From contig JAKMXF010000309.1 in assembly GCA_024704765.1 (NCBI GenBank), positions 124,001 through 188,000 on the forward strand: 64,000 bases of DNA, given 5' to 3'. Position numbers and translations under genes: made by a program. A model generated the notes under the pieces. That model made no database searches, had not been told where the DNA came from, and saw nothing but the letters and a program-made list of their open reading frames with translations. The DNA comes from Oopsacas minuta (lineage: Eukaryota; Animalia; Porifera). Shown here one piece after another: positions 13,597 to 59,648 of this stretch; the stretch's first letter is position 1, and every line of letters starts with the position of its first letter.

Positions 13597-14010
13597 ATTA
13601 ATTCTGCATAAATACAGTTATTGTGAACCATAAATAGGTCTCTTTATAATATTATAGTATAAAACAAATGCAGTGAAAGTAATGCATTGACTGACTTAGT
13701 TCATAAGAGGGAAATCAGAGAATTGTCATAATCTGTGAGAACATAAAAACCATAATTGATTGTAGAAGTTAATCATTGATTAGTGAAATCTCCATTTAAG
13801 GAATGCTAATTTTGTCAGTATACTGCAGTTAAAGAATTGTTATTACCATATTTCTAAAAATATGCAACCAAACTACATTCTTTATTCCCTGTTATAATTC
13901 TATCAAACTGATATATTATGAATAACGGATCAATGTTGAATCATATAGCCAATGCATTAATAGAAAAATCTGAAGGATTTTGAAAGATTCAAATTACTAT
14001 AGTTTGTGTA

Positions 14011-14370: not shown

Positions 14371-14537
14371 ATACAGTGTATTTGTTAAAAGATCAATAAT
14401 TATGCGTTAGAAATACAAAAGTTAGATTATATTTCACAAAAAAAGTAATTACAATAATTAAATTCTCAATACTAGAAATAACAAACAAATAATACAAATA
14501 GAAACACACACCATTAACAAATTACATATCTCTCGAA

Positions 14538-16322: not shown

Positions 16323-16899
16323 ATATGATAGAATTATAAATCAGGCTTTAAGCATATATTTATCGTTTGGCGTTTATATCAAATTACCCTAAGTTAATAT
16401 TTGATCCATTATTATTTGTTAATATTATGTAAGAATTATCTGAGAGCGGCAAACCCTCCTCTAGACGTATGATTATTGATGAAATTATATTTGAGAGTGT
16501 GAAATTGAGGATATCTCCCTATACCGTAACATTAATTCGGTGATTTTGGCGTATGTACATTTGGAGGAGCGTTAGGAGCGTACTCAGAATAACCTGTATA
16601 ACTCCCTGAATTTATAAAGAATCTCAGGCTGAGATTGGGCAAATAATTAAGGAACCCTTAAAGAACTTTCTGCAAATAATCAAACTGGAATTTAGCGAAA
16701 TGTTCAGTTGGTTAAATACAAATCATCCGCGACTATTTCGCTCCTGTTGGCTTATAAGGCCCCCAAAAGAGCTTCAACTAAAAATCCCCCACCCACCCAG
16801 TGTCCAAAAACACATACGAACTTGAAAAATTGGAAGTCCACATTTCTTTCCACACGACCTAAAAATTACCTAGATCAAATATTACTGAACTATCTGGCT

Positions 16900-17390
16900 C
16901 ATGTAAATCCGGTGTAACAGTGGATAGTGTTCCCGTGAATAATGTTCTCCCGAACCTGATATATTAGGGGAGGTTACGAATCTGGGGTCCACAGGATCTA
17001 TTGCAGTCTGTGGGAGGGGGCCTACAGAATTTGTTAAAATTAGTATAGAGGGTTCAAGGGTGAAGAAGGTTGGGAATCGCTGCACCAGGGAATATGGTTC
17101 CCCAAATAGTTCGAAGTTGAGCTATTAACAATGCAAATCCGCACGAAGGATAAGTCATAAGTAACTACCTTTGAGGTTTTGAGGGAGGATCAGGGGGCTA
17201 TATTATACCAAACAGGTTGGTTAAATTTGTACAAGTTCCGCATGAGGAATCACTTACCCGCATAGATTTACATACTTTGTATGCAGATTCACATATTTGA
17301 TAGCTCCTAGAACCATGATCCCCTCCCTATAGGTAATAATGTTCAGAGGAACAGTATTCACGGAAACACAATTTACATGGAGCAAATATT
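16900..17390. repeat. Degenerate inverted-repeat element (probable old MITE)
   Basis: gtgttcccgtgaataatgttctcccgaac (~16927) vs the reverse complement of gttcagaggaacagtattcacggaaacac (~17341-17369). Confidence 0.45.
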
Positions 17391-22884: not shown

Positions 22885-23709
22885 CTAGTTTAATTTAAAA
22901 CTCAAAAAGATAGCACCTTCCTTTCCCTCTCCCAACTTCCCATCTAATGGAAACCATTCTTCAACTAATTCACCATCAAATACTCTTGCAGGAATCTCTA
23001 TATGAGCTTGGGCAATTCGTAGATCAGAAGCAAATGATCTTCGATCAAATATTTCTAAGTCTAATCCTGTTGAATTATTCAGTAGTGCGACGTGGAATAA
23101 TCCATCCCATTTCGGGTCTTTCCCATCGTTCACAGCACAGACAGTTTCATAATCTGTATTACTAATATTTAGCTTACAGTAAGGGTCCATTATGAACCTA
23201 CTGTAGCTCTTATTGAGGCGAGCATGAGATACGGTAAGAGTTAGACGGCCTACATAAGTCTGAGACGGCAGTGATGAAATAGGACTTAGTGTGGATTTGA
23301 TCATTTCTGTTTCTGATATTTCCCCAAACTCTGTGATGAATTTTTGGAGTTCTTCTAGTCTGGGGTAATTAAAGTATGGGTGTGGGAGTTTGGTAGGTGT
23401 TTTCAATTCTTGTAAACGCTTGCTATAAACATCAGTAGCATCTTTGTGTACAGATATGTTAGCGTTTACTTTCAAGCTTAACTGATGCATATGCTGTTGA
23501 GCATTTTCTATCTCTCCAATGGCAGTTATTCGAATCATCTCTTTATCGGCATAATCAGATTTGAGGTTGGAAAGATATTTTAAGAGATTATCCCTCCTCG
23601 CGATTAGCTCTGCGATCAGAGGGTTAAAAACGTTCCTGATTTCAGTTGCCACAGAATCGAATTGTGCAATTTCTTTATTCGTGAAATTCTTCGGTAAATT
23701 AGTAGCCAT
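22885..23709 (-). CDS. Coiled-coil + Tollip-derived C2 protein, copy B (274 aa)
   Basis: YVGRLTLTVSHARLNKSY..MDPYCKL..PKWD..EIFD..EEWFPLDGKLGEGKEG aligns closely with the TOLLIP C2 next door. Confidence 0.85.
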   Translation of the reverse strand: MATNLPKNFTNKEIAQFDSVATEIRNVFNPLIAELIARRDNLLKYLSNLKSDYADKEMIRITAIGEIENAQQHMHQLSLKVNANISVHKDATDVYSKRLQELKTPTKLPHPYFNYPRLEELQKFITEFGEISETEMIKSTLSPISSLPSQTYVGRLTLTVSHARLNKSYSRFIMDPYCKLNISNTDYETVCAVNDGKDPKWDGLFHVALLNNSTGLDLEIFDRRSFASDLRIAQAHIEIPARVFDGELVEEWFPLDGKLGEGKEGAIFLSFKLN

Positions 23710-23904
23710 GTTAGTTTGTATAAAATAGTCTTAATTTCAACCAATCTCTATTTATACCTGTGTAACCTGAGCATACCAAAGTACCTGAATGGTTGCTATC
23801 GTGATACTGGGACTCTATTAAGTGGTTATATTCTTGGTTCTAACTATTCATAGGATTAGTGAATTACACAGCTGTATCCAAGTAAGCTGCTTATTTATGA
23901 AAAG

Positions 23905-23983
23905 CAAGGTTGAAACCGCTCAAACCGAATATCAATATTCATGAATAGTAGCCTAACTGAATACTGATATTCGGTTGGTAACC
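23905..23983 (+). mobile_element. Copy of short hAT-like MITE family
   Basis: caaggttgaaaccgctcaaaccgaatatcaatattcatgaatag...cggttggtaacc matches 51748-51836. Confidence 0.65.
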
Positions 23984-24391
23984 AAACATTGAACTATTTT
24001 GCCAAATAATTTTCGATTGCAAGTTTAATAAAAAGCTAATTTAAAGAAAATTACTAAGAAATATATTACGGATTATGATCGACCGCGAACCAAGTAACCT
24101 TCCTGTTTTACGAAATTAATTGATTACCATATTTCCCTGAATAACCGCGCGCATATATTTATTTCGTGGAGGTGAATACCCTGGCACATATTCAAGCTCC
24201 GGCGAGTATTTAGTAGCATAGCTATGGTCCATGTGGTCCAATATACTTAGCTTAACCTCAACATAACAATCTAATCACAAACAAATATACAAATAACCAA
24301 TAAAATACGAATAGGAGAGGAAGAACACATAAACAATAAATATATACTGTTTTATGAGAATCCAAGCACAAATAAACAACTAAATTAACAA

Positions 24392-25279
24392 TCAAGAAGT
24401 TGACATAGACAACAATGCATTGATAGTATTATCAGTATTATTGTCTTGACTAGCCAACACACTTACGATAATCTCTTCCTCCAAATCAGGGAACATATCT
24501 TTCAGCTGCTTGAATCCCTCCGTAGAAGGTTGGGAGTGTAGTGCAGTACGTTGACTATGCTGGTTCACAGCCATATTAGGCGGATCGTAGGTTATACGAG
24601 GCTCTGGGGGCTGTTGAGGGGGTGAACCGAAATTCGCTCGTTCGAATTTGAAACCTAAAAGCATTGTACCTTCCTTCCCATCGCCTAAGTTCCCATTCAA
24701 TGGAAACCAATCTTCAACTGCCTGACCTTCAAATATAGCAGCAGGTAGTTCAATATGAGCCCATGCTATTCTCTCGTCAACTGAGAATGCTTTCTCATCA
24801 AAAATCTCTATATAGAAGCTTGTTATGCCATTGGGTAATGTAACGTATATACATTTATTCCATTTTGGGTGTTTCGCACCATTAAGTGAGGTAGGAGTCT
24901 CGTATACACCATGACCTATAGTCAGTCTACAATAAGGGTCCATACGTGTTAAACCATAGTTCTTATTCAGACGTGCTTGTGCTAGAGTTATAGCTAGCCG
25001 TCCTACGTATTGTTGGTAGCCTGCGTAAGGATTTTGAGGCTGAGTCGTTGTTGTAGCATAATGTACAGGCTGAAGGTTACCGGGAGTTTGGGTTGGCAGC
25101 TGTAGACGTAGAAACCCATCTGGTACATCTAGCATTGCTTTCTTCTTTAACTGTTCTCTCCAGTCTGGTTCTAGCTGTTGTTTCCTTACTGGAGATGAGT
25201 GGATGAAGTCTGTGAGACGAGTAGTCTCTGTAGTATCTGTTTCTGATGAGTTATCAGTATCGAGCACTATACTAGCCAT
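24392..25279 (-). CDS. TOLLIP: Toll-interacting protein (TBD-C2-CUE), intronless, ~295 aa
   Basis: Tom1-binding-like 'VPDGFLRL'; C2 'GRLAITLAQARLNKNYGLTRMDPY'; CUE 'LKDMFPDLEEEIIVSVL...NALLSM'. The ATG at 25279 is preferred over the upstream non-ATG start. Confidence 0.93.
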   Translation of the reverse strand: MASIVLDTDNSSETDTTETTRLTDFIHSSPVRKQQLEPDWREQLKKKAMLDVPDGFLRLQLPTQTPGNLQPVHYATTTTQPQNPYAGYQQYVGRLAITLAQARLNKNYGLTRMDPYCRLTIGHGVYETPTSLNGAKHPKWNKCIYVTLPNGITSFYIEIFDEKAFSVDERIAWAHIELPAAIFEGQAVEDWFPLNGNLGDGKEGTMLLGFKFERANFGSPPQQPPEPRITYDPPNMAVNQHSQRTALHSQPSTEGFKQLKDMFPDLEEEIIVSVLASQDNNTDNTINALLSMSTS

Positions 25280-41774: not shown

Positions 41775-44700
41775 TCAGTCACTTTGAATATCTTCCGCTT
41801 GCGCTGGGATTAACTTGTTTGTAAGTTGGGTCAACATTTTTTCAATATTCTGTTCTCGGATTTCAAGTTCTTGTTCTCTTTTTTCAATCCTATGTTCCCT
41901 TATCTCAATTCTTCGTAAAGATCTTCTGATTTGAAGATTGTCATTCTCAAGTTTTTGTTTCCAATTCGGGGTATTTATTTTGACATTTGTTTGTTTCGTT
42001 TCCAAAGCTTTCAAAACATCTTTCATCTTGATTAAGGCCTTGAAACCGAAAGTAATTAAAATTCTAGAAATAATAGATTTCTGATTTGGGTATAATTTAA
42101 CGGTTTTCAGCGCAGATCTTTTACGCAGCGAGTAAATCGAAAAGGGAAAAGTTTCTTCGAAAAATAACAACAAATCTATCTTAAGGACGATTCGTTTCAA
42201 AGTAGCAGATTCTTGTACACCCTTGATATCATCGACTGCCAAACCAACAAGCAAATTCGCAAGAATAATCGAAACGAAAACAATGAAAACCAGGAACAGA
42301 ATGTAACTTGATATTGGATGATCGAGTCTCCTCGTAATATCATTGAATATATTATCGTATTCAAATTCCCCAGTTAGCATGACAGTAGTTTTTAGCAATG
42401 TACTGAATGGGTTACGATATTGACTACAGAAATTTTGTTGCCTAAAAACCATGTAAAACGAGACAGAAAACCCAATAAGAAACGCAAGAGCGAGTAGAAT
42501 AACGCGAAAAAATGTTTCTATCACATGCAGAAACATTAATATGTATATACCAAGATGTGGAAGTTTGCCAAGAAATACGACCAAGTTGAACCAAGAAAGC
42601 AGAACCACAAATGCACCTAGCTCCCAGATTAGAGAATTTTCAAAACCACATGCGCCTACTTCCTGTCGAATCTTGAATACATCTGATACATACACGATTG
42701 AACCAACATAAATAAACCATTCGAGATAATTTTCAATGCTTAGGAAATAGCCTTTTATGTCACCAAATATTTGAAGAGATTCGAATAAAAGTCGGAAAAA
42801 TGCGAACATTATTATAAAAGCAGCCATGACGATAGAACTAATCACACGACCTTCATTGCATCTGGTTGAAGAACAACCATATGTATCTACATACCAGTTA
42901 GAAGCCCCTGGGTCAGAACCACAATAGTTGGAATTACGATTATTATCGAAACCGAGCTCGTGATCAAACCTAAGATCACAGGAAGGAACAACATACGTGA
43001 ATATAGTTAATAGAAACACAAACGTGAAGTATGATATAAGATTCCCGTAGTACAAGTAACTAGCTCTTGTACTCCATTTTAACCTCATCATTGTCAAAAC
43101 TAGCGGATGGTTTAAGAGATCAATTCTAGAGTGTTGTACCATAAACGAAAATGGATGAGATTTCTTCTTGAGGCGCGAGGCATCGTAAAGATGAGATGCG
43201 AGTGGTTTCTTAAGTTTATATTTATCTTCATTGTGTAAGTAGAAAGTTTGAAATGCTTCTACGTCATCTAGCAGTTCAAAATTAAATTCTACGGCTACCG
43301 CTGGATTTTCTGGTGAATCAAATTGATTGAAATTACAATTAATATACAAGGACATTACCTTGTACGCTTGAGTTGGCATTTTTGGTATCATTTTTCGCAA
43401 TGGAGTAAGTACTTTACCGTGAATGAAAGTGTAATTTTTCAATGCTTTACGTATATCATGATGTTGTATTAAAATCTCAACTACCTCTTCGTTACCAGCG
43501 TCAATAGCTAGATCTAGTGCATTATTACCTATCTCAGCTCTATCTTCATGCTTACAAATATCAGCACCGTGTTTTAAGAGTAATTTTACCATTAAAAGAT
43601 GACCGGCTTGGCAAGCCAAAAGTAATGGAGTAGAAGCAGTGACGTCACTGTCTATAGGTGCTTCCTCTTGGATGAGGTACTCGGCGACCTGGACATGGCC
43701 AGCGGCAGCTGCGAGATGTAACGGAGACCTGTTATTGAAATTAATAGCATTGATATTAGCCCGAGCCTTCATTAACAATTCAACTACTTCCAGCTGTCCT
43801 TGTTCACAAGCTAAATGTAATGCAGTATTCCCGTACATATCTTCATCACCCAACATTTCTATTGAAACTTCTTCCAAATAGTCTAACAATCTCTGAACGA
43901 TTGTAGCTTTACCACTAAACGCAGCCACGTGTAATGGGGTCTCTTTAAATGAATTCAGTGCTACGACGTCACAATTCTTCGTGTCTAATAGGAGATCTAG
44001 TATTTCAACGTAGCCGTGTTTGGCTACCACGTGTAGTGGTGTTTTATCCTCATCATCTTTCTCATTTACTAACCATCTACCTCTCCGATGGTTCAGTATC
44101 TCTGTTACAACTAGTTTTTCGTTCTTCTCGATTGCAATAGATAGAGCATTTCTCCCTAGTCTATCTCTTAACTCTACTTGACAATTCGTGTGTTTGAGTA
44201 TTTCCATTACTCCCATTGCTGATCCGTAGTAGACAGCCAACATGAGTGGAGAATAGGAATTTAGATTTTTTGTGTTAATACATGCGCCTGTATTCAATAG
44301 GAATTCTATCATAGAATATCTACAGTTTCTCGCTGCGTAGTGTAACGGTGTATTTTGAGTTCTATCAATCGCACTGATGCACTCAGGATCTGTTTCCAGT
44401 AGCAGAGCAGCGATAGATACCTTACCCTGTTGTGCAGCCAAATGAATTGGTTTTGCTCCATCCGTATTCTCACTGTCGAGTGTAATTCCTATCTCAATAC
44501 AGAGTGTAACACACTTCTCATTGCCACCAAGGCAAGCAGAATGCAAGATTGAATTACCTTTAACGTCATTACACACAGTTAATAGGTGTAAATTATTGGG
44601 ATCAATGCTAATGAATTTGGTATATAGGATACTGAATATCTTCTCCGAGCCAACGAATGCGGCTAGATGGAATGGAGTTAATCCGTGCATGTTACATGAA

Positions 44701-45509
44701 AATATGTCACATTTCTCTACCAACAGAGATACAATGTTAGAATATCTCCTCTCACAGGCAAAGTACAAAGCTGTAGACCATTGACAGTCAATTGCATTAG
44801 TAGAAATTCCCTGTTTTAACAATTCAATTACTCCAAAGTAATTGCCTCTAACACAAGCATGATGTAGTGCAGTTTGTTCGAAAGAATCAGTTTTATTTAA
44901 CAGTTTATCACCTCCGAATTCTATTAAAAATCTCAATGATGCTACACTGCATTTGTTTGAATCCTGTGAAAAGCTCTGTATTTCCTCCTCACTTAACTTT
45001 TCAATATCTAAGTTTTCTTGTTCTACAGATATATATCTAGCTGCGTAATGTAATGGTGTATAGCCTATATCAGTTTCAACATTCAAATCTACATTATACT
45101 TTCCCCCGTTCTTTAGGAGAGCAGTCAATATGTTGAATCGATTATAACGAGCTGCATAGTGTAATATAGTGTGTTGTTTGTTGTCAAATGAATTCAAGAG
45201 ATGATCAATATCGTAGAATCCAATCTTTTCAACAGTTGAAATACTACTACGAGTCCATTTCATCTGTTTGCTAGTACAAATGAACTCTAGCAGTTCACTG
45301 AATTTCTCATCCATGCCATCACGTGCGGCTTGTAACAACTCGTTACGGAGAGATATATGGTCAGAGGAGCGCATACCGTGGGTAATAGGACGATTCGCCT
45401 CACTAATTGAATCTTGTTTACCTTTCAAAGGAAATAATTCAAGTCCCTCTGCTGAGCCTGTGGTATCCAGTTCAGAGTAAACAGGTATACCATCTTCTAT
45501 ACTAGCCAT
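41775..45509 (-). CDS. TRPA1: TRPA-like ankyrin-repeat ion channel, copy B, intronless, ~1244 aa
   Basis: Same architecture as copy A, pore 'MLTGEFEY'. ATG at 45509 (MASIEDG); the further upstream in-frame extension crosses (TA)n and a repeat. Confidence 0.9.
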   Translation of the reverse strand: MASIEDGIPVYSELDTTGSAEGLELFPLKGKQDSISEANRPITHGMRSSDHISLRNELLQAARDGMDEKFSELLEFICTSKQMKWTRSSISTVEKIGFYDIDHLLNSFDNKQHTILHYAARYNRFNILTALLKNGGKYNVDLNVETDIGYTPLHYAARYISVEQENLDIEKLSEEEIQSFSQDSNKCSVASLRFLIEFGGDKLLNKTDSFEQTALHHACVRGNYFGVIELLKQGISTNAIDCQWSTALYFACERRYSNIVSLLVEKCDIFSCNMHGLTPFHLAAFVGSEKIFSILYTKFISIDPNNLHLLTVCNDVKGNSILHSACLGGNEKCVTLCIEIGITLDSENTDGAKPIHLAAQQGKVSIAALLLETDPECISAIDRTQNTPLHYAARNCRYSMIEFLLNTGACINTKNLNSYSPLMLAVYYGSAMGVMEILKHTNCQVELRDRLGRNALSIAIEKNEKLVVTEILNHRRGRWLVNEKDDEDKTPLHVVAKHGYVEILDLLLDTKNCDVVALNSFKETPLHVAAFSGKATIVQRLLDYLEEVSIEMLGDEDMYGNTALHLACEQGQLEVVELLMKARANINAINFNNRSPLHLAAAAGHVQVAEYLIQEEAPIDSDVTASTPLLLACQAGHLLMVKLLLKHGADICKHEDRAEIGNNALDLAIDAGNEEVVEILIQHHDIRKALKNYTFIHGKVLTPLRKMIPKMPTQAYKVMSLYINCNFNQFDSPENPAVAVEFNFELLDDVEAFQTFYLHNEDKYKLKKPLASHLYDASRLKKKSHPFSFMVQHSRIDLLNHPLVLTMMRLKWSTRASYLYYGNLISYFTFVFLLTIFTYVVPSCDLRFDHELGFDNNRNSNYCGSDPGASNWYVDTYGCSSTRCNEGRVISSIVMAAFIIMFAFFRLLFESLQIFGDIKGYFLSIENYLEWFIYVGSIVYVSDVFKIRQEVGACGFENSLIWELGAFVVLLSWFNLVVFLGKLPHLGIYILMFLHVIETFFRVILLALAFLIGFSVSFYMVFRQQNFCSQYRNPFSTLLKTTVMLTGEFEYDNIFNDITRRLDHPISSYILFLVFIVFVSIILANLLVGLAVDDIKGVQESATLKRIVLKIDLLLFFEETFPFSIYSLRKRSALKTVKLYPNQKSIISRILITFGFKALIKMKDVLKALETKQTNVKINTPNWKQKLENDNLQIRRSLRRIEIREHRIEKREQELEIREQNIEKMLTQLTNKLIPAQAEDIQSD

Positions 45510-45562
45510 ACTAATATTTATTATCAAATAAATATATATATATATATATACATACAATACTA

Positions 45563-45905
45563 ATGACGGAAAGATGGTCGCGGGGAAAATTAGTTGTGGA
45601 AAATTGGTCGCGGGGAAATTTCGCCGCGAGGAAATATAGTCATTTACTTTTGTTGTTTTGATTCTAAATACTCTCAGCAACTCTCAGCCTGCTCCAGATC
45701 CAACGATAATCCAATCAAACACCACACCAGTTAACCAAATAGTCTACTGAAATGCTCATCTTCTCAGCTCAAGCCATTCTAGCTAGACAATCCAGAAAAT
45801 GCCAATTCTAGCACCTTCCAACGTGAGTTCTAAATACTCATAAATTCCCGCGACCAATTTCCTGGCGACGAAATTTCCTCGATCATTTTTCCGTCAACGA
45901 TACAA
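45563..45905. mobile_element. Foldback-like element whose inverted ends are built from short tandem motifs (aaaattggtcgcggggaaa)
   Basis: 45563-45640 and 45842-45900 are inverted, imperfect arrays of the same motif. Confidence 0.55.
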
Positions 45906-46443
45906 TACAGTGAAGTTAGCCTTTTAGGAGTTGTAACTTAATAAGAATTTGGATTTAGAAATTTACCCTCAAGAATACTGAAAATTGGGTAAAGGGCCGC
46001 TCAGTTTCATAGTTGCCTGGAGCAGCAAAATTTGAAATCGCTCCAGACTCCAAGGGCAGGCACTGTATACGCATCACATCTTAGAAGATATAGTGAAACC
46101 CCGTTTAATAGTCAAATGAATTGAATAAAAATAAATGTAAAGATCTGCTAGGACAACTTGCCGAAGGACATTGTGCCTTCTACAGAATGTATATGCTTGA
46201 TACTGTAAATATATAATTCATATTGTAGTATCATAGAAATAATACATTCCGTATATGGTGTCGGAAAGATATCCTTTCGGCAAGATGTCATATCGACAAG
46301 GTAGGCGGACAGGTGTAAAAGATAAAAACAAGAAGGAATAGCTACGAATAGACAAAGGATAATATCACTAATGTAATGAGTAAATTCAATCTGTAAATTA
46401 GTAAAATAGTATAGAATACATGGAAAGAAGATAGAATGAAAAA

Positions 46444-47344
46444 TTAGAATATTTGTAGGTAGCAGTTACTCTTCTGGGATTGACAGACTACTATAATTCT
46501 ATCTTGATTATCTAATGTGATTCCTGCTGGTTGATCAGAAACTGTAATCTTGTGAATAGATTGAAATCAGTATTGAAAATAGAAATAGAATCAGAAGCAC
46601 CATCTGAAATTATAATATTTCCATGTCTGTCTATAAAAAAGAAGCAAGGATGAATAACTTGCATTCCTTCCCCTCGAGTATAACACTCTTAAGTAGAATG
46701 AGATTTTGCTCAAAGATATGAAGACAAGGATTAGATTCATCTATAATGTAAATGTATTTTTTGAATACTTTTACATCAAGTGGGTATTTGAGTATATCTC
46801 TTCCAGATTGAGATTTGAAGTGAAAGTCTTTGGTGAGTATCTGAACTATATTGCTATAATAGTCACAAATGTAAATATCTTCATTAGATTCATTCATCGT
46901 TAGACTGAAAGGATAGCTGAATTCTAATTCTCCGTTTCCATATTTACCAATTTTGGAAATGAACAGTCCATCGAGTGTATAGTTCAGGATACAGTGGTTA
47001 TATAGAGAAATAAGAATCCTATTCCCACAAATAGCTAAACCAGACGGATGGTTCATCTCTCCTTTACCATTGCTATCTCCGAATCTGAATAGGTACTTAG
47101 CAGTACTGTCAAATACCATGACACTTTTTTCCCGATAATCTGCTATGTAAATATTCCCGGTTTGGTGATCTATTGTAACACCAAATGGAGAATCAAGTTC
47201 CACATTTGCATATCCTTTCCTACTAACATTCACTATAGGTTGTTTCTTTCTTGTATAATCGATTGTTTTCACTTCCTCAACTTTGTTATTGACACGTTTT
47301 CGATTCAATCCCAGCTCGAAATTGTCTTCTCCAATAGTAGCCAT
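46444..47344 (-). pseudogene. NHL-repeat gene with short N-terminus; two apparent 1-nt frameshifts near the C-terminus
   Basis: NHL repeats are intact to ~46680. The family-typical tail (GEGMQVIHPCFFFID ... YLQIF*) continues in shifted frames to the TAA at 46444-46446. Confidence 0.75.
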
Positions 47345-47991
47345 TACCTTAGTTATCTAACAAATAAGATATTCAATACAAATCAAAATATATACATGTG
47401 AGCTCTCAACAAAGTAGCAAGGCATATAGGACAGCTACTATTATGAAAGTAGATATCAAATAACATATTAGCTGTCAGTATTTCAACGGGAACGCGAAAT
47501 TTGACACACAACTTGGGATTTCGGATTTTGACCAAAGATTCTGGGTGTACGAAATCCAATTTTCTTTTTGGGTCAAACTGTACTCGTATTCCTTAATTCT
47601 CATTGAAAGCATTGGATGGGACTGAAAATTAAATGATTTCAATACTGGGGCCACTAAACTATCAGTAAAATCTTACCCAGAATAGACTAAATCCAGTGTC
47701 GCGATATATAGAGAAAGTTCGTAGATTTGACTTGGGCATGATTATGAAATTTGACATATGACAATAATATGGCAAGAAGTTCGTGAACTTTGGTATGAAC
47801 ATGGGATGAACTATCATTGTGAATAATTAACTAAATATTTACGAGTGAGAGAAGAAATAATAATGAAAGAGTACATACACAACAAAACAACATGCTACAA
47901 ATAATTAAAGTCTACCAATATGAATGTTGGGTAATCAATGTTAAATCAAATCACTGTTTCACTTTTTATGTTTGAAAATGTACTGTGAGAA

Positions 47992-48920
47992 TTATAATAT
48001 ACTATTTTCTATTAAACTTTTTTCTTGAGCGAGTTCAACTGGTGTTTGTTGAGAAGTTTCCGATTCATTTTGTTGAATTCCAATTGGCGCAGATGGTTGC
48101 TCGCTAGCTTCATTGTCATCCTTTCCCTCAATAAAGTCTTGTAAATTCCGTATACCGTTAAGTGTTGTGGAATCAGCTTCACTAACGGAACATTCTGTAT
48201 CTTGCTCACAATCAGGGGACGAAGAATCTTGCGCTTTTTCACATATTTTCTCAACTTTTCCCAAATCAACTGAAACTTCTTCAGGGAAAAAAGAGCTAGT
48301 CCTCTCACTAGAAGATGTCGAATCGCTACTAAATACTATCGTCGATGCAGTGCTGATTTCGTGTTTCATACGCTTTGCAGGAGGAGAAAATTTCGAATCA
48401 GGAGTATATGAAGATTGTTGTGGTGGCGAAGCACAAGTCACTTTCGCATGAGAAATAACAGTCATTACTTTCTCAAAAGCGCGAATATATTTCAATTTTG
48501 AATAATAATATTTTTTGGGTTCTGAAAGTAAATCGCAGATTCGTTGTAACGTGAATGGCGGAGCTTTTGTAAATCTTTGTATGAGTAGTGAATCGATATT
48601 TTTCAAAATTACACTCTGTTCTTCGCTTTTTTCCGTATTTGGGCCTTCAAAATCACTTAAAACTTCCGTCAATTTGACTATTATAACTGTAGATAAGTAT
48701 CGCCATGGGTAGAGCACTTTACCATTCCTCGAAATTTGTAATATATCTCAGAAAGTTCACTTGGTAAAGCAGGAAATTCTTTGCCAATTATAAGTGAGAT
48801 TTCTCCTAACTTAGTTACATACTCTCTGAGAATATTCAAATATTCTTCCGGATCAGTATCAGGTAAAGGCACTGTTAATTCACGAGTTAATCTGCTTGTC
48901 TGACTGCTGTCATTAGACAT
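47992..48920 (-). CDS. PPP4R2: Protein phosphatase 4 regulatory subunit 2, with an apparent 1-nt frameshift at ~48740
   Basis: 'PPFTLQRICDLLSEPKKYY...YIRAFEKV' is the PPP4R2 core, followed by an acidic tail. The N-terminal ORF 48681-48920 joins in frame if one base is added. Confidence 0.75.
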
Positions 48921-49584
48921 TTGTAAGTTGAAATATGCTATATAAGAAAAGCAGATTTAGAATATATTATTGAGATATTTAATGTTTCGGCAGCCATGAA
49001 GGACACAAAGCGCCGACTGTGAGGTTTAATATGCGCGTAATCAATAGGTTACAGTCCAAAACAGAGCCAGAAACCTCTACAATAGAACAATAATGAATAT
49101 AAGGGAAGTAGTGTAGTCTATGGGAGAGGGTGTGGTGGTAATTGTATACATGACAACACTCGCTGGATTTTACAAAAATCCGAATATATTCAAATTTTGT
49201 GCCTTTTCCCTCAATTATCGCCTGAAAACAGGTATCCTGAGCACTTAGTTATAACGAGAGTTTTGCTGCAGGGGTTGCCAACCTATACCATCTGTGGACC
49301 CTCTCCCATATAATGTAAATGTCATATGGACTTCGGTACCACCAAGAGGTGTATGTATATAAATTTACAATGCCAGAAGAGTCTAATAATTACAAAAACA
49401 ACAAACAAATGTTCCAATCAGCAAACAATAATAATATTATTAGAAATATGAATATGCCTATAACATAAATAAACAATTAAGCTCTTCTAAGAGAAGTAAA
49501 CAAACTAGTAAACAACTAAAGTAATTCTAAACACAAATATTTTAGCTCAGTTTTGAACTTCATTCTTAGAGTATTTCAACACAA

Positions 49585-52500
49585 TTATGCCCAATACATA
49601 GTACCTAGGTCTGTTTTCACTTCTTTACGGAACTGATCCCAATTACCATTAGGGGGGATTAACTGATTGCGATCTCTATCCGGATCGCCGTAGCCAGCAG
49701 ATTTGTTATAACGAAATGCTACCCAGTGACTGTAATAAACTGGTGTGGGATAGGAGACAGATTTCGCGCATCTAGCATATGTATGACATAGTTGAAAAGT
49801 AATAGCTTGTAGTGAATCAGAATTGAAGCCGTTTTCATCCCATAGAACGTGATATAAAGCGCATTTTGCAGTGCCTTGTAGTGCAAAATGACTGTTTAGG
49901 TAGAAATTGAATTCCACTTGGTGGGTAACTGTGTGATCTAGTGTAGTGCCTGGAGGGATATTCTGCGCTTTTCCACACGCGTCTCTAGGGTTACTCGGGA
50001 ACATTCGCAGATGGTGACGTTTTTGTACTATGATTATAGTCATGGTAGGTTTGTATTCGGGATCTATTTCTAGACAAGCAGCTCGTAGAGCTAATAGCTC
50101 GTGTTCTAGAACGTGTTGGAATTGACCTTCTGATACTCCGTCTCTATAGAGATGGGATATGTAATTTTACTGGATTTTGAGAGAAATAACTTTAAAAATA
50201 TATGTTTCGTATTTGAAGTATATTGTAAAATGCTCCCCAATATGATTATCAAATACTTAACCATGGTTGGTGGATTTAGTATATCCGACCCCTCCCTTTG
50301 TTGGTTGGGGTATCTCCCCTAGATTAGTGATTACACATGTTTGGATGTTGTTCAGGGAGTTTTTGATGCGGAATTGGAGGAGGAGTTTATATAAAAGGTA
50401 AATAAACGAAAGACACCATCCATGGTTCAATACCTAATAAGCATATAGACCGGAGCCTCTCTTTGCTATGGCAACTACCGCACTGTGTAATAACACAGCA
50501 ATAACCAAGATTACTCTTCTATAACCGATCACGACTGATTTCTACGTTCGTAATGAAAAAGAACACTAAAATTTTACCAATCCTCGCACCAAACACGTGA
50601 ATTTACAACCTTTTGAGGTCATAAATGACACATTTTCCTGGTTAATATAAGCGTATACTTTTAAAAATTGGAATATTGATTAATTTTGTTTGTTTTCCAT
50701 CGTCATTTTGTTAGAAATTTGCCTTACAGCGCAGGGCAATTAATTTAATTTATTAAGTTATTCGTAAATATATGGCAGCGAATGGAGAAAAGTTTCATGT
50801 ATACTACGTACAGTCAAATCCCGATATTTTGAAGCTCAAGGGGCTGCGATAATTCCTTCGATTTATAATTATCGATGAAAACAATGTAACTTTGACGGTT
50901 TGAGACAATATTTATACAATTTCATATTTTGACATATATCCGTGTTCGATGTAACAGGAGTTGACTGTGTTTAATAAGTATTAAACAAACCTGTAGTATA
51001 TTATCTTTTGCGGTCTTCTTCCCTTGTTATACAGAATAAATGCATTTATCAATTCTTTAGCCATAGCCTTGAATTCTATAATAATCTCTTTCCGATAATG
51101 TCTTTTGGTGCCAGTTGTCGTGTCAGCATCTGCTCGCTCATGTTGCTGAAAACGACAAGAACTCGCGTATTTTGCGAGTCTTCTATCTATTGTGGCAACT
51201 GCTGCAGCGATTGAAGGGGTGTATCTATCTGTTCCTGGTTTAGGATGGTTCACATCTGCACCCATAAACATTGTAGGGTCCTTCATTAGTTGAGCTGTAG
51301 GAGTACCTGAAAATGTAAATTCAGCTAATCGGTAAAATCTGATACGGGTGTTTCTCAACATATGGTTATATGACTGAACTTAGCCAAACTGTAGGCGGCC
51401 AATGATGGATAATATGGTTGATTTTTTCCAATTATAACATTATCAAATCAATTTGATTTACACTTGATATATATTTGTAGAAATATTGTTAATTATCCTT
51501 TGTATAAACTTATATTTTAAGGTAAACTGATCATTTCTGTTTCAACTCTTCGCGGTATACATATAATATAATTGAGAGTATGTTGATTCAAATTATTGAT
51601 TTATTTCACTTGAAAACAATACAAAATCATACATTTTCATCTCTGCAGAGATTTTTAACTCATTAGAAGTTCACGGCCATTATTACAAAACCTGATCAAG
51701 CAGCTGATCAGAGTGTGGTCAGGATACAAATTAATTAATAGTTTAATCAAGGTTGAAACCGATCAAACTGAATATCAGTATTCATGAATAGCAACCTAAC
51801 CGAATACTGAATACTGATATCCGGTTGGTAACCTTGAGTTAAATACACTTTAAAATTATCCCAGGACTTCAAAATTTATATGCAAATATTATGAACTGTC
51901 CCCTCTTTTATGAGAAAAAATCCAGAATAACCAATGTTTTCCCTGAACGGTTGACAGGTAAGCAAATTCATACCATATGTGGCCATAGCTGAGTTTTAAA
52001 AACAGTAATATAGGCTTAAACTCACCTTCCATTATAATACTATGATTAACTCCACCCAATTTAGCATTGATCTTTAAACATATATTCCCTACAGTACTAC
52101 CGTTAGCCTTATTCACATTAAACTGCTTTACACACTGTGTGGGTACTCCTATCTCTGTGTCACCAACTTTCTTAACTTCTCTATACACAACTGAACTGAA
52201 TTTCCTTGGCTGCATCTTTTCATCAAGTATAACTACAATCATCTGTAACACACCGAAATACTGTTTCAATTCGATTAGTAGTTTACGGATTTCGGTATCT
52301 GTTTTCGGTTGACGTTGGATAATTTCACGAGGAGGTTTTATAACCATTCCTTTACTCCCACCTTGATGTATTAGCTCGCGGACAAAATTGGAAATGTTCC
52401 TATCATCTGTCCGACAAAAATCTATTACAATCCAACTATCCATTGGTTTAGCTTGTAGCAATTTGTACCGGGTGATGTCCCATTGGCCTCGTGAGGGTTC

Positions 52501-55500
52501 AGCTCGAGCCTCTTGGTCGTACAGGATCTGAGGGGGCTGTAGGACACGTCCATCAACACGAAGCATTTCTGGTTTGGTACTTACACCGTAATGAGCTTGT
52601 ACCTAGGAGAGATCTCAATCTCTAAATATGATCATATGAAAGCAATATTACCATCGTAAATACACAGTTAATACCAAATATTATAATATATATAAACACT
52701 TAATCATTCCTATTTAATGAGGTATGCTACATCACCCAGCGCACAAAATTATTCACCTGTGGAATGTGGACCCCCTCCCATAGACAGCAATACAAATTAT
52801 GTTGACACCTTGCTATCGTCCTTGGAACTTGGGAACAGCTGCACTACATATATATATATCCCGTCAAATATGTTCTATACACTCTGGCCATATATAGGAA
52901 TAGTTAAGTGTTCATAGCATAAGGCGAAATCACTCATAACACATAATAGCTAGCCAATTCTGATTTAATGACGTCACAAACCATAACACAAGCGAAAGTT
53001 TGCGCCTTTTGCTAATACAGTAAATTCCCGTTAAAACGAAGTGATTCATTACTCCCTTATAATGAGAGATTTCGCATTTGCTTGTAACATATATTATCAG
53101 ATATTGAATATTAACTGTGTATAAACTAACGATAGCATAGTTGGTATATATCCATATATTACGATACCTCATCAGTTCGTCCTAGTACATTCCTAGCAAT
53201 CTCATTTATCATATCTCTCCTTTCAGGTGCAGGCCTTGCTGCGAATTTTAACATTTTTGTAGTTTGTTCAGATTCTAATTCCTGACCACTTCTCTGGGCA
53301 TCTTTAATCAGACATAATTCTATTGGTAATGCTACTCTCTTGCCGGCAGAATTAGCTGTGGGAGGTTTTCCTAAAATATAATTAATTCCAGTAGATCAAA
53401 GTTAAGAGTACTGACGTCATGAGATGCGTCATAACGAGGGTATCAGGGTTTTAAAGTTAATATTGCCTGAGACTGGGTAAGGTAACTTTCGGATATTTCT
53501 AAAGTTGAATATTAAGTCATAATTGTGAATTTTCGGAAAGACTTGGACCAGTCTGAATCAAGCCCAAATATCCCAGGGGTCTTCCAGTTTGTTCAATGAA
53601 TTCTGGACACTTTTTAATAGGATATGTCCTCAGATGCGAATCGATGTGGATGGATAACAAATTTTACTGAGGTTTAGAAGATGCATAAAATGAGTAATTT
53701 AAGATAGTGTGATATATGCATTTTCAAACAATCGAATTCGAGTCCTTTCTGCAGAAATGCCAACTCTTACGGTTATTCTGTGAGTTCCACGGATTTCTCA
53801 CATATTTCAGAAGGTTACTCACGGATTGTTGAGACGCTAGGTTGGCATCTCTGCTTTTTATGACGCGATCATGATTGAACTATTCATAAGAATGAACCAT
53901 TCTTCAACGAACAGTGAATATCAGGCGAAAACACTTCAAATTTACAAACAAACAAACTTAAGACTTACCGACATTAATACAAGGTATGTGTGGATGTTTA
54001 AGGCGTATTTTATACTGCTGTAAGAAATATTGCTCCACACTAATTTTGTTACCGTCTTTTTCAAATATTTCATCTCTAGCTGATTTCAATAGCACACTAC
54101 CTCTACTCACAATCCTACTTCTCTTTGGGTATTGTAAGTGAGATGAAATAACATGTAAACTATTGAGATGATCACTAATTTTGTGTGAATATTTCCGGTT
54201 ATTCGGGTCAAATGCCAAGTTTATATCCTTAGTGTCTAGCATGTTTAGGATAAATTCGAGTAGTGGCAGGGGTTTAACGAATACTCCACATGTCTTATCA
54301 ATATTTATATATGGTTTCCACTGGCCAGGACGGACTGATTGGGAGAAACCATCCCAAATCCAACGGCCACGTCCAATGTCATTGAATTCTTCAAATCTCT
54401 GTGGTTTGTAAAAGAAACTTCGACCCATTGAAACTGCTTGCGATTTAGGGAGTTCCTTTAGGATTATGTCAATTGCAGTTATTGCTTCTTGTAAGAGATC
54501 GAGTTCATGTTCTCGTTCTACTCCAGTTTTATAGTTTTCAGTTCTGTTAACGAAATGTTGCAGGATTGAGAGATCCACTCTAAAATAGAAAAAATATATA
54601 AATACGTCACACGCTGTATAATCCAACCTCAGGGTTCAAACGAGGTATTAGGGGTGCCGATAATCGCTACTCAGTTTCCCTGTTTCTAGCAAATTCCCCG
54701 TTTGTGGAGGTTCATTTGTCTGGGTCAAGGAATTTGCTCTATTAGAAGTTCCTCGTTTTCTACAGGCCCTGATCATGGAGCTTACACGGTATTGTAACAT
54801 TTCGTAAGCGACGGCGCCATTCAATGCTTAATATGTCAATTGGAATATGTTACTAATAATTACGTATATTAGAATGTCCTGGATTTGTCCTAACTTGTAA
54901 TTGAAATTTTGGAGAATCTCTGTCAAGAGACCGGAAATAATGCTTTGGGTCTTCCCCTAACTACCATGACAGAACTTGGAACCCAAATATGATTGAGTTT
55001 AGATGTAACTTGTAACAGATACACGTTTGATATTAAATTTATACAGAAAACAGTATAATATCAGACATATAATAGAATATCTGTAGACAATACTCACTAG
55101 CATAACTCACAACAATAATTCTATCTTTATCATCTATTGTAATACCAGTTGGATCAGGAGTAGAGATTTTGTGGATACATTCATATTTAGAATTGAAAAT
55201 ATGAATAGAATCAGAATCATAATCTGAGAATAGAATATTATCAGAATTGTCTAGAAAGAAGAACCAGGGAGATATCACTTGCTGTCCTTCTCCTCTAGAA
55301 ATGATATTCTTCTGTAGAACTAGATCTTTATTGAAAATGTGTATACAAGGATTTGATCATCCAGGATAAAAATGTTGTCTCGATTAAGTTTGATATCAAG
55401 TGGTTCTGTGAGAATATCTTTACCAAACTGAGACTTGTAATGAAGGCTATCTGAGAGTATTTGAATGCGATTGTTACTACTATCACAAATGTAAACATCT

Positions 55501-58500
55501 CCATTTGATTCATCGATTGTTATACCCCAAGGATAATTAAACTCTAACTCTCCGTCTCCAGATACACCAACTCTGGAAATAAACTTTCCATCTAGCTGAT
55601 AGTTCATTATACAGTGGCTAGATTGAGAAATAAGAATTCTATTCCTACAAATAGCTAAACACATCGGGTAGTTCATTTGACCATTACCATTACTATCTCC
55701 GAATTTGAATAAATACTTAGCAGTACTGTCAAACACTTTAACACAATGATTCCATTGATCTGCTACATAAATATTTCCAGTTTGGTTATCGATTTTAACA
55801 CCAAGTGGATTGTAAAGTTTTTCATTTCCACTTCCTTTCTTACAAACACTCACTAGAGGTTGTTTCTTGCTTGTATAATCAATTCCTCTTACTTTATTAA
55901 CAAAATCTCCCAACTTGTTTACTTCACCAAATGTTGATTGTATTTCCTTCCTTACTCGACCCAATTCTAACTCAAAAGTATCTTCCGAATTTTCTCTATT
56001 CTCTTTATCTCTCGGAGGATTAGCTGTAGCCATTCGCTTTACTTTTCCCAGTTGTAACTTACAAATTTGTATAAATTCAATAATTCCAATTCAATTAAAA
56101 TACACTAAATGATATGACTAATAAGTTCGTAATAATTAATTATATCGTAATAGGAAAATCCTCTAATTGTATTAACACACAGGTATAACGAATCTAATAT
56201 AAATGAATTATGCTATTAATAGATTATTCCTAATATTAGAGATATAATTACGAACTTATTAGTCATATCATTTAGTGTATTTTAATTGAATTGGAATTAT
56301 TGAATTTATACAAATTTGTAAGTTACAACTGGAAAAGTAAAGCGAATGGCTACAGTAATCCTCCGAGAGATAAAGAGAATAGAGAAAATCGGAAGATACT
56401 TTTGAGTTAGAATTGGGTCGAGTAAGGGAGGAAATACAATCAACATTTGGTGAAGTAAACAAGTTGGGAGATTTTGTTGATAAAGTAAGAGGAATTGATT
56501 ATACAAGCAAGAAACAACCTCTAGTGAGTGTTTGTAAGAAAGGAAGTGGAAATGAAAAACTTTACAATCCACTTGATGTTAAAATCGATAACCAAACTGG
56601 AAATATTTATGTAGCAGATCAATGGAATCATTGTGTTAAAGTGTTTGACAGTACTACTAAGTATTTATTCAAATTCGGAGATAGTAATGGTAATGGTCAA
56701 ATGAACTACCCGATGTGTTTAGCTATTTGTAGGAATAGAGTTTTCATTTCTGAATTTAGACACTTATAATGAACTATCAGCTAGATGGAAAGTTTATTTC
56801 CAGAGTTGGTGTATCTGGAGACGGAGAGTTAGAGTTTAATTATCCTTGGGGCATGACAATCGATGAATCAAATGGAGATGTTTACATTTGTGATAATAGT
56901 AACAATCGCATTCAAATACTCTCAGATAACCTTCATTACAAGTCTCAGTTTGGTAAAGATATTCTCACAGAACCACTTGGTATCAAACTTAATCGAAACA
57001 ACATTTTTATCCTGGATCGATCAAATCCTTGTATACACATTTTCAATAAAGATCTAGTCCTACAGAAGAATATCATTTCTAGAGGAGAAGAACAGCAAGT
57101 GATATCTCCCTGGTTCTTCTTTCTAGACAATTCTGATAATATTCTATTCTCAGATTATGATTATGATTCTATTCATATTTTCAATTCTAAATATGAATGT
57201 ATCCACAAAATCTCTATCACTACCCATCAGGTGGATAACAATAGATGATAAAATAGAATTATTGTTGTATCTGGGAATTGTGTACGCATATTCTAATACT
57301 TTGCTAACTATGGATTGAATTTTGTTTGTTTAATTAAACTTTAGAAGATCATTGAATTAGAGAATGAATTATTACATATGTCATACATTTCTATAGAAAA
57401 GTATAGAGGCAGTGTTTCCCCCAAAGCGAGTTAAGCGTGTCAAATAACGCGATATAATATCTAGTTGTGTTAAAAATGAACACTATGCAAAGGATTTAAT
57501 AAGTATATAAGCGACAGAGCACCACACAATCCCAACATGAGCTCTTTCCAAAAATTCTATGGGAAACACACTGATAGTGGGGGTGGTGAATAATTTATGG
57601 GCCGGGACCGGACCGCTGCAATTCTATTAATGTAGTAGTAATTGAATTCAATAATATTTAGATCATTTCATCATATTTGGATTCAAAGTTCAGTCATAGA
57701 CATGGATCGGAAAGTTACACCTTTTCCAGAAGATCTCGAAGTGGGGAGATTGAGCCCAGGCCTAATATTAGGTTCTTCGTCGTCCCGATTCTTCGCTTTC
57801 AGAGGTAGTTCAAAATACCCGCTTATATCAAAGTTGAAATTGTATAAATATAGTCTCAAACAGTCAAAGGAACCTAATTTTATCTCTGGATTTTCAATAT
57901 TTACCCTGGAGAATAAAAAACTAACTTGTTTGCAGGTTTGAGAATTACATGAGCTTTCCTTTTAACTCCATTCCTTCCATCCTCTGGATCTCTCCATTCT
58001 ACTACATGTTTCAATAAGGGAGATGATCCCATTAACTGTCGTTTTGTGTACATGATAGCTCTACCATCATATATTGGATGTTCGTTAGGATAGATTGATT
58101 TACATTCATCGAGAAACATATTCATAACGTAACGTTTCTCGTCTCTATCCGTCATACCGTTTCCTTCATAACCTTTTGGAAAATATAGGATAAGAATAGC
58201 TGAAACGTATAAGAGTGTTGTTTCGACAAAGTAGACCTCTCTATATACTTTTTAGATAATTAACCATGGATGGTGGATTTAACGTATTTTTAGTTAGGCC
58301 ACTGTTAATGAGAAACTTGTTTCAGCTCCACATGAGATCCACCTGACTATGTATACGGGCGCGCGACTCATTATCTTTATCTCATTATTTTGTGACGTAA
58401 CAGCGGGAAAAATGGTTCATTCATAAAAATATGAAAATGACTGAAGTTGATATTGTACGCTGGACGACAAAAAGTGACCTACATTGTACTATTGATGTTC

Positions 58501-59648
58501 GACGTTTGTGCATAGGTCCGCGGGTCTTATCATATCATTTATCAAATTTACACACGTTTTGGTATGTAGATATTTCAAAGTAATGCTAAATTCATTGTTT
58601 CCAAGGCTAATTAGGGATAATCGAGTATACAGATATCCAAAATTTGATATTTTTAACATTCTTTCTACAAATTTTTGGAAGATTTTGTCATACGTAATAA
58701 GATCCAATAAATTGCAATAATTTCCTTATATGGAAGTGACATGGCCATTGCCTGTGTTGAAGGAATCTGGTATAGAATAATTCCTAATTATTTAAAACAC
58801 ACCTTTTCTCTGCACCATTTCCTCAGTGAATACCTTAACATCATATTGTATTATTTCTCTGCATTTAACTTCTAACTGAAAGAAGTTTACTAGTAATGGT
58901 ATTTTCCTTCCAATCTTTCCAAAGTCTGGCCTTTTTGGTGGAAAGAAATTCTTCTCTGTTTGCACAATAGAAATTTGGATACAGGTGTAGCACCAGGTGA
59001 ACCTCTTGCTATAGACAGAAAATGGTAAATTAAAAAATACATAGTAATTTCAAGATTTTGCTTATGGTATGAACATGATCTATGAAACATGATCAATGAA
59101 TTTAACTTTTGACATTAAATTTTGACTTTTGGCATGAATTATGAACTTTTGAATGAAAATAGCATGGAATTTTAACTTTTGACAATAATATTTTGCTTAT
59201 GACATGAACTTTCGTTTTGGCAGGAATATAGCATGAACTTTCGAGTTTGTGAAATGAACACTGTGGGTATATCATCTGGCAACGCTGCCATGAAGATTTC
59301 GAAATTATATAAATAGTTATATACTATGATATCATAGCTTAATATTGGAGCAAATATATATTTTCGAGTTATCTTACCAGGTAGAGCAGGTTCAGAAGGT
59401 ACAGCAATTTCCCCGGTAGGCATAGAACTTGTGATAGTAGGTTCTAGCTGTAATTGCTGTAGCGAAGCAGTAGGTAATTGAGAGCTTGATGTAGGGTCAC
59501 TCAGTGAGGAGGTAGAAGGTGACCCACCCCCAGAGTTAGGACTTGAGCTATCGGATGATGGGGGAGAGCTGTTTTTTCCACGCCTTCCGCGCCTCTTTCT
59601 CCCACCATTTCCACCAGTTGCACCATCTTGTTGATTAGGCTGATCCAT
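49585..59648 (-). CDS. AGO: Argonaute (AGO clade), 8 exons, ~978 aa
   Basis: Exons 59648-59378, 58955-58803, 58172-57926, 54579-53969, 53370-53168, 52602-52026, 51306-50991 and 50143-49585; all GT-AG with consistent phases. Motifs PPKRPDFG, PIYDGR, LPIELC, TQCV, KINAKLGG, GADVNHP, RDGVSEGQF, VQKRH, YYSHWVA and TMYWA*. Confidence 0.95.
50261..50425. mobile_element. piggyBac-like MITE in AGO intron 7
   Basis: TTAA-CCATGGTTGGTG ... CACCATCCATGG-TTCA. The same left end (ttaaccatggatggtgg) occurs at ~58260. Confidence 0.5.
51748..51836. mobile_element. hAT-type MITE, 89 bp, in AGO intron 6
   Basis: TIR CAAGGTT...AACCTTG with 8-bp flanks AGTTTAAT / AGTTAAAT. Related copies at 5465, 22594 and 23905. 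Confidence 0.75.
55039..56033 (-). pseudogene. NHL-repeat gene, left arm of the intronic inverted repeat; frameshift at ~55358
   Basis: ORFs 55320-56033 and 55039-55278 are one gene split by a missing base (ctggat-gatc vs ctggatCgatc in the right arm). Confidence 0.85.
55111..57268. repeat. Inverted repeat, arms ~55111-56133 and ~56247-57268, 113-bp spacer, inside AGO intron 3 (54580-57925)
   Basis: tacactaaatgatatgactaataagttcgtaat (56101-56133) is the exact reverse complement of 56247-56279. Similarity extends ~1 kb outward. Confidence 0.95.
56346..57296 (+). pseudogene. NHL-repeat gene, right arm; frameshifts at ~56355, ~56763 and ~57215-57240
   Basis: atggctacag-taatcc vs atggctacagCtaatcc, and cact-tataatg vs cactGtataatg in the left arm. 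Confidence 0.85.
57410..57573. mobile_element. hAT-like MITE in AGO intron 3
   Basis: CAGTGTTTCCC ... GGGAAACACACTG; TSD imperfect. Confidence 0.5.
59080..59260. repeat. Degenerate AT-rich tandem array (catgaacttt-like motif) in AGO intron 1
   Basis: Repeated atgaacttt/taactttt units; similar sequence at ~47720-47820. Confidence 0.45.

Follow-up and report, generated by a model that had tools for sequence, protein, structure and literature searches.

Intron 3 of a predicted Argonaute gene in the sponge Oopsacas minuta contains two decayed copies of an NHL-repeat gene, arranged head to head as an inverted repeat with arms of about 1.02 kb. Here, we report the structure, transcription context and evolutionary setting of this palindrome, which, in our view, is probably an inverted duplication of recent date, neutral and riding passively in the Argonaute pre-mRNA. 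The window, by which we mean the whole 64-kb stretch of DNA that was analyzed, is the forward strand of contig JAKMXF010000309.1 (C309; assembly GCA_024704765.1) from position 124,001 to 188,000, and coordinates are those of the window unless a contig is named. The genome (61.46 Mb in 365 contigs) was assembled from a hybrid of PacBio and Illumina reads, scaffolded, and polished (PMC10280926).

Minus-strand open reading frames (ORFs) from 59648 down to 49585, searched exon by exon rather than as a joined protein, matched Pfam ArgoN, ArgoL1, PAZ, ArgoL2, ArgoMid, and Piwi in that order. The best solved structures for exon 4 were human AGO4, AGO3, AGO1, and AGO2 and Arabidopsis AGO10 (E = 2e-27 to 9e-21), with no PIWI-clade chain among the solved matches listed for that exon. 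Motifs resembling those of human AGO2, which may include the catalytic DEDH tetrad of slicer-competent Argonautes, are visible in the exon translations. Judging from these matches, the host gene is an AGO-clade Argonaute.

Short-read evidence came from four public runs (X1 to X4) of a single study, taken as assembled contigs and placed on 53400 to 58600; none of the four is catalogued as RNA. X2 was treated as RNA-like (depth, 2000 to 5800 for Argonaute exon contigs and 4.5 to 21 for intron contigs), and X3 and X4 were treated as DNA-like. Contig depths are per-contig means, rare variants are lost in contigs, and cleavage cannot be revealed by them; over the arm interiors and the right-arm frameshift sites, contig coverage comes from short contigs of paralogs.

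An X2 contig (depth, 2015) joins 54579 to 57926, skipping 3346 nucleotides (nt) that are bounded by CT..AC on the plus strand, which is GT..AG on the minus strand. The initial annotation had proposed a spliceable intron at 54580 to 57925, and the joint in this RNA-like run shows those boundaries to be exact. The number three follows our gene model, in which the splice joints of introns 2, 3, and 4 are confirmed; intron 2 (58173 to 58802) and intron 4 (53371 to 53968), both GT..AG, are marked by X2 loose ends. Because exons 3 and 4 are joined in RNA, every Argonaute pre-mRNA must contain both arms of the palindrome on one strand. Introns of the species average 341 bp (PMC10280926), and intron 3 is about 10 times as long. 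The features of the locus are as follows.

53969 to 54579, minus strand: Argonaute exon 4 (linker L1 and the start of PAZ), with Pfam ArgoL1 and PAZ matches, splice donor GTAAGT, and an X2 loose end that resumes at 53345 to 53369.
54580 to 57925, minus strand: Argonaute intron 3 (3346 nt, GT..AG), which starts with GTTAGT, ends with TTTTAG, and holds the whole palindrome.
54650 to 54745, unstranded: copy of a short dispersed repeat (at least 40 genome copies, 77 to 92% identity) in the 3' part of intron 3, outside the palindrome.
55039 to 56033, minus strand: frame of the left NHL pseudogene, with its ATG at 56033, comprising ORFs 55320 to 56033 and 55039 to 55278 and aligned to intact paralogs.
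55109 to 56133, minus strand: left arm, an NHL copy oriented like the Argonaute gene, including about 100 nt upstream of the ATG.
56134 to 56246, unstranded: spacer and predicted hairpin loop (113 nt, unique, AT-rich).
56247 to 57268, plus strand: right arm, an inverted NHL copy that ends 36 nt short of the family stop codon.
57926 to 58172, minus strand: Argonaute exon 3 (N domain), with a Pfam ArgoN match and an X2 loose end that resumes at 58808, 69 to 73% identical to the exon of relatives.

A search of the window for inverted repeats returned, at this locus, four collinear blocks forming one palindrome. As a single alignment, the arms (55109 to 56133 against 57268 to 56247) span 1029 columns at 96.7% identity, with 23 mismatches and 10 gap openings, and a chance origin is ruled out for a 1-kb repeat at 97%. 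Matches to NHL repeats (Pfam PF01436; E = 1e-21 to 7e-9) lie in both arms, with the left gene on the minus (host) strand and the right gene on the plus strand. TATA-like GATATAAT motifs stand at the spacer edge, one on each arm side, and the spacer is single copy in the genome except for one 53-nt partial match. The head-to-head NHL inverted repeat that had first been described here, with arms of about 1.02 kb and a 113-bp spacer, is thus borne out by the alignment, the Pfam matches, and bridging contigs; over the 93 nt adjoining the spacer, the arms are 98% complementary.

The center of the palindrome was bridged in all four runs by contigs of 177 to 193 nt reaching at least 31 nt into each arm, the left outer junction by an X4 contig (54691 to 55131), and the right outer junction by an X2 contig (57190 to 57955). 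Spacer depth was 72 in X3 and 51 in X4, with flanks at 50 to 70, and inner-arm depth at 56334, counted on words common to both arms, was 121 and 100, respectively; a single-copy spacer beside an inner arm of about double depth is expected of a true palindrome and not of an assembly artifact. X1 and X2 carry one pair of single-base variants in the spacer and X3 and X4 a different pair, so the structure is present in more than one haplotype. In X1, depth drops toward the center (14.8 versus about 200 in the flanks), which may reflect the loss of snap-back fragments in library preparation.

A candidate deletion allele, suggested by an X1 joint from 54719 to 58296, was rejected because both ends lie in dispersed repeats of at least 40 copies. 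The second of these repeats (58295 to 58440, in Argonaute intron 2) also has at least 40 copies at 77 to 92% identity and reaches depths of 5000 to 17000 in DNA-like runs.

The NHL family to which the arms belong has at least 42 copies in the genome, with 13 of the 42 matches listed falling on C309. Intact paralogs are single-exon ORFs of 303 to 319 amino acids (aa) with the C terminus CLQIF, and in two forms that are longer (411 and 429 aa), the N terminus is extended by a stretch that is coiled-coil-like by eye. A six-bladed-propeller model and Pfam NHL repeats apply to arms and paralogs alike, and the nearest solved structures are the TRIM-NHL propellers of Thin/TRIM32, TRIM71/LIN-41, TRIM2/3, and Brat (E = 1e-32 to 1e-16). 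The family shares the six-bladed NHL propeller with these proteins and differs from them in its size (303 to 429 aa), in being strongly expanded and fast-evolving, and in that no RING or B-box match to Pfam was found in the 319- and 429-aa single-exon ORFs, a search that lay downstream of any further exons. The arms are each other's closest match (97.25% substitution identity). Against L003, an intact 319-aa NHL gene at C309:220082-221108, about 40 kb past the window, identity was 93.4% for the left arm and 92.9% for the other. From these comparisons, we read the arms as sister copies of a TRIM-NHL-like propeller family.

Both arms have decayed, and they have done so differently, as the initial annotation had claimed and the arm alignment substantiates, with one frameshift in the left arm and at least four in the right. 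The left arm lacks 1 bp near 55359, a state backed by X1 and X3 contigs that lack the inserted base at 55356, and its family stop codon TAA has become TAT, which adds 11 codons; its 3' end is otherwise complete. In the right arm, single base pairs are deleted near 56331 (upstream of the ATG), 56356, 56390, and 56765, indels lie near the 3' end, and the last 12 codons are missing. Intact 303- to 319-aa paralogs occur in the same assembly, which argues against the frameshifts being general indel noise. Exact-product look-ups of the ORFs of both arms in other assemblies returned no record.

Codon changes since the duplication were 6 nonsynonymous to 1 synonymous in the left arm and 12 to 3 in the right arm (about 9 to 2 after a hand adjustment that drops four codons past the repeat end). 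Neither arm is under purifying selection, and the ratios are neutral-like. Derived changes numbered 18 in the right arm and 5 in the left (p = 0.01 with indels; p = 0.10 with substitutions only), an asymmetry that would fit the left arm being the parent copy, although it is suggestive only. Between the common ancestor of the arms and L003 (L003:1468-2427 against 55039 to 56033), there were 29 nonsynonymous and 5 synonymous codon differences, a ratio that hints at either diversifying selection or relaxed constraint in the NHL family.

Relatives were found by a protein search with Argonaute exon 4, and seven contigs (L025 to L031) from six assemblies were compared. The six relatives carry the exon on long contigs at 61 to 74% identity and, as far as the contigs reach, share the gene order DHHC-ankyrin, Argonaute, PPP4R2, and one or two NHL genes, which in L028 are followed by a large gene with ankyrin repeats. 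The window has a 1301-aa ankyrin-repeat ORF (41775 to 45680). The same order runs along the minus strand of the window from 41775 to 59648, and its conservation implies that NHL genes are long-standing neighbors of this Argonaute.

The interval between exons 3 and 4 in relatives is 2.7 to 7.2 kb (five assemblies with both exons on a contig). Their intron holds a same-strand nested ORF of 790 to 807 aa, 40 to 78% identical among relatives, with internal repeats and an N terminus that is hydrophobic and signal-peptide-like by eye (L025:6893-9301, L027:6662-9079, L028:7360-9732, L029:6901-9324, L030:6916-9324, and L031:3-1514, the last a short contig carrying the 3' part only). This nested ORF had no Pfam match, does not occur in the window, and is effectively absent from the O. 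minuta genome (best match elsewhere, E = 1e-4). Across the six assemblies, the orthologous introns contained no NHL sequence and no inverted repeat longer than 86 nt. Comparison with related sponges had been suggested at the outset as a check on the palindrome; it is absent from all six, and what the relatives conserve is the intron as host of a different nested gene. By sequence comparison, then, intron 3 has long housed a nested gene, the old one having been lost in this lineage, where an NHL gene now sits and has undergone inverted duplication. The palindrome is lineage specific and young; its arms differ by about 3%, versus 1 to 1.6% between haplotypes in the flanking intron.

The window also contains two further inverted duplications that are young, as follows.

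2333 to 3877, plus strand, and 7388 to 8926, minus strand: two intact MatE genes of 514 and 512 aa, arranged tail to tail, whose inverted arms (1746 nt) are at 97%.
32 to 1125 and 1524 to 2614: inverted repeat with arms of about 1.1 kb at 95 to 99% and a 398-nt spacer.

The repeat at 32 to 2614 contains no ORF of at least 100 aa, and its outer part overlaps the 5' end of a MatE gene. An unrelated 495-aa membrane-protein ORF lies between the two MatE genes. Inverted duplication thus seems to be a frequent mutation in this genome, so palindromic architecture alone carries less weight. A second NHL palindrome on C309 (L012:854-2365, C309 about 23270 to 24780; 5'-truncated copies with 639-nt arms at 92%) was not counted, as it has a single "n" at its junction (L012:1493) and is probably a scaffold join. 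As to how the palindrome in intron 3 arose, a mobile-element origin was considered and rejected, with no flanking direct repeat of at least 20 nt present; no Rfam family was found in 54000 to 58800. The arms, L003, and L004 have a common 5' limit of homology at or near the TATA-like motif, a position more in line with gene conversion, or with core promoters that are conserved, than with the end of a transposon.

When folded in silico, the intron gave 1003 base pairs between the arms, the longest uninterrupted helix being 260 bp, and the hairpin alone had a minimum free energy of -1685 kcal/mol versus about -440 kcal/mol for shuffles. The proposal that each Argonaute pre-mRNA contains a stem of about 1 kb is accordingly supported by the splice joint and the predicted fold. 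The genome encodes candidate machinery for such a substrate: at least two long ORFs in which RNase III domains are paired (Dicer-like), further RNase III loci, ADAR-like genes, six full-looking Argonaute/Piwi loci with many fragments, and eight genes with the RNA-dependent RNA polymerase (RdRP) domain, which are uninterrupted ORFs of 2061 to 2671 aa at the following positions.

RdRP genes: C33:574315, C348:19916, C177:475376, C313:331930, C321:1103114, C221:206891, C354:294141, and C66:496832.

Five Argonaute/Piwi ORFs of 383 to 1030 aa are apparently intronless. The RdRP and Argonaute sets make up a large RNA interference (RNAi) gene repertoire that is undiscussed in the genome paper (PMC10280926).

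Perfect 21-mer positions in common with the stem numbered 425 for L003 and 60 to 164 for other paralogs, among them 126 for the copy at 26.3 kb, which is 86% identical to the arms (L003, 93%). The notion that the stem could target NHL paralogs is compatible with these matches; the copy at 26.3 to 27.0 kb, singled out in the initial annotation, is a poorer candidate than L003. One X2 contig (depth, 228) that was placed on the right arm has the letters specific to L003 and a base that a single paralog alone shows; the L003-type potential target is expressed. At every diagnostic arm position listed, X2 has the letters of the paralog and not of the arm, while the spacer and flanks are present. Changes in X2 show no excess of A to G or T to C (4 and 4 of 23), which, as contigs drop rare variants, is no evidence against adenosine-to-inosine editing. 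Intron contig depth in X2 was 21 on the 5' side of the palindrome and about 5 at the spacer and the 3' side, and the spliced joint and exons were 100 to 1000 times deeper than intron contigs. Argonaute maturation is not visibly limited.

The explanation that we favor, and hold to be probable, is that a nested NHL gene underwent a recent and neutral inverted duplication. A single-exon TRIM-NHL-like gene of a large, locally clustered family would have come to sit in intron 3 of the AGO-clade Argonaute, where a 1.02-kb segment that begins in the core-promoter region and breaks off 36 nt ahead of the stop codon would have been copied in inverted orientation 113 bp upstream, probably by fold-back or template-switch repair. 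Both copies later decayed to pseudogenes. The palindrome is now a passively transcribed part of each Argonaute pre-mRNA, in which it could fold into a near-perfect stem of about 1 kb, and is spliced out at normal GT-AG sites with Argonaute expression not visibly hindered. Such hairpin-like architecture may leak some Dicer or ADAR products, and it would most likely be a neutral passenger with no selected function. We lean toward this reading, which the initial annotation had offered as its alternative, because both arms are decaying, relatives lack the palindrome, and inverted duplications are locally abundant.

Several points weigh against it. Neutrality is a default here and not demonstrated. 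The relatives are distant (61 to 74% in exon 4), so the absence of the palindrome from them leaves room for a young, lineage-specific function. The genome encodes a set of genes for processing long double-stranded RNA (dsRNA), with paired RNase III ORFs, eight RdRP genes, and ADAR-like genes, and it expresses an intact paralog 93% identical to the arms that has 425 perfect 21-mer positions in common with the stem. The missing arm letters in X2 could reflect dicing or poor synthesis of complementary DNA (cDNA) through the stem, as has been described for Drosophila hairpin RNAs (PMC10317233), or else just low depth.

Of the rival explanations, a functional hairpin RNA (hpRNA) locus survives best, and we regard it as unlikely. 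The hairpin in the excised intron or pre-mRNA would be diced to small interfering RNAs of endogenous origin (endo-siRNAs) that are loaded onto Argonaute and silence NHL genes in trans, above all L003, with their dosage coupled to Argonaute transcription. The predicted near-perfect stem of about 1 kb, with helices up to 260 bp and a free energy far below that of shuffles, argues for such a locus, as do the single-strand transcription over both arms that follows from the splice joint, the presence of Dicer-like, RdRP, and several Argonaute genes, the 21-mer matches (425 positions with L003 and 60 to 160 with other paralogs), and the L003-type mRNA contig in RNA-like X2. Drosophila hpRNAs arise likewise, by inverted duplication of target genes (PMC10317233), and hpRNA-like clusters are reported in the sponge Amphimedon (PMC6211395). 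On the other side stand the absence of the palindrome from six relatives, the commonness of inverted duplications in the region and genome, which makes architecture alone weak evidence, and the continued expression of L003; in Drosophila, moreover, unique endo-siRNA clusters are underrepresented in introns (PMC6211395). A bolder form of this idea, which we find more doubtful still, is that of a newborn hpRNA gene within the Argonaute pre-mRNA, in which each transcription would deliver about 1 kb of dsRNA to be diced into siRNAs against the fast-evolving TRIM-NHL-like family, L003 included. Solved relatives of this family are known partners of Argonaute and of the microRNA-induced silencing complex.

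The likeness to known hpRNA systems is one of form. Drosophila loci (hp-CG4068; Nmy/Tmy of D. simulans) are likewise inverted duplications of a gene-family fragment that are young, lineage specific, near paralogous potential targets, and transcribed by RNA polymerase II (PMC10317233). They differ in having Dicer-dependent siRNAs, target repression, and a dedicated primary transcript, whereas the O. minuta locus is a sequence in a spliced Argonaute intron of a sponge. In the mouse oocyte loci (Tam et al. 2008, as related in PMC6211395), inverted repeats of pseudogenes are sources of endo-siRNAs; here too, both arms are pseudogene copies of an expressed family, and any siRNAs would act on functional paralogs. 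As described there, the mouse loci are backed by small-RNA reads and by Dicer and Ago2 knockouts, and it is in geometry that the present locus resembles them.

Self-regulating hairpins occur in small-RNA genes: intron 14 of Arabidopsis DCL1 carries MIR838, and Drosha acts on DGCR8 mRNA. An Argonaute self-limiting loop of this kind, in which hairpin cleavage in unspliced pre-mRNA would destroy part of the Argonaute transcripts, strikes us as decidedly improbable. The position of the hairpin inside the pre-mRNA of an RNAi effector, comparable to the DCL1 and DGCR8 cases, in which an RNA-silencing factor likewise has a structured substrate of the Dicer or Drosha type within its pre-mRNA, speaks for it, as does the fall in intron depth across the palindrome in X2, although these depths are per-contig means and DNA carry-over could contribute to them. 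Against it, the spliced joint and exons far exceed the intron contigs in depth, the stem has no match to the Argonaute exons tested even at 15 nt, and this Argonaute is one of several in the genome. Those precedents, furthermore, are short, microRNA-like hairpins with demonstrated cleavage, whereas the stem here is about 1 kb long, derives from an unrelated gene, and accompanies abundant spliced mRNA.

Hardly more promising, and ranked just behind it, is a divergent pair of working NHL genes that share a bidirectional promoter, with the frameshifts explained as private alleles or as errors of assembly. About 100 nt upstream of the ATG, with a TATA-like motif, are retained in each arm, palindromic multicopy sequence is hard to polish in an assembly of this kind (method in PMC10280926), and the right-arm frameshifts lack contig confirmation; against this, the right arm is structurally devoid of its last 12 codons, the left-arm deletion state is present in X1 and X3 contigs, both arms have neutral-like ratios of nonsynonymous to synonymous change, and the exact ORF products of neither arm are on record in other assemblies. 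Least credible, and very unlikely, is the earlier worry of an assembly artifact, whether from a long read that was chimeric by fold-back or from a scaffold wrongly joined, for which the scaffolded hybrid assembly (PMC10280926), the "n" exactly at the junction of the second head-to-head NHL pair on C309, and the low X1 spacer depth could be cited, but the window has no N anywhere, short-read contigs run across the two outer junctions as well as the spacer, X3 and X4 have the single-copy spacer, the roughly doubled inner-arm depth, and allelic spacer variants of their own, and arms 3% apart around a unique 113-nt spacer are unlike a chimeric read.

In a genome that has several Dicer-like genes and eight RdRP genes and that contains many inverted duplications of young age, the locus offers a concrete place to map a small-RNA library, the first from a glass sponge. 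Should the hairpin be processed, the birth of hpRNAs through inverted duplication of the genes that they target, a mechanism documented to date mainly in flies and plants, would extend to one of the earliest-branching animal lineages, and an Argonaute gene would be physically coupled to a guide precursor. The locus would then supply the first hpRNA-target pair demonstrated in any sponge, and for the first time a guide precursor and its effector would be seen to arise from one transcript. If the hairpin is silent, intron 3 would still be a clean instance of nested-gene turnover, in which the gene nested there in at least six sponge relatives has given way to another gene, one that duplicates.

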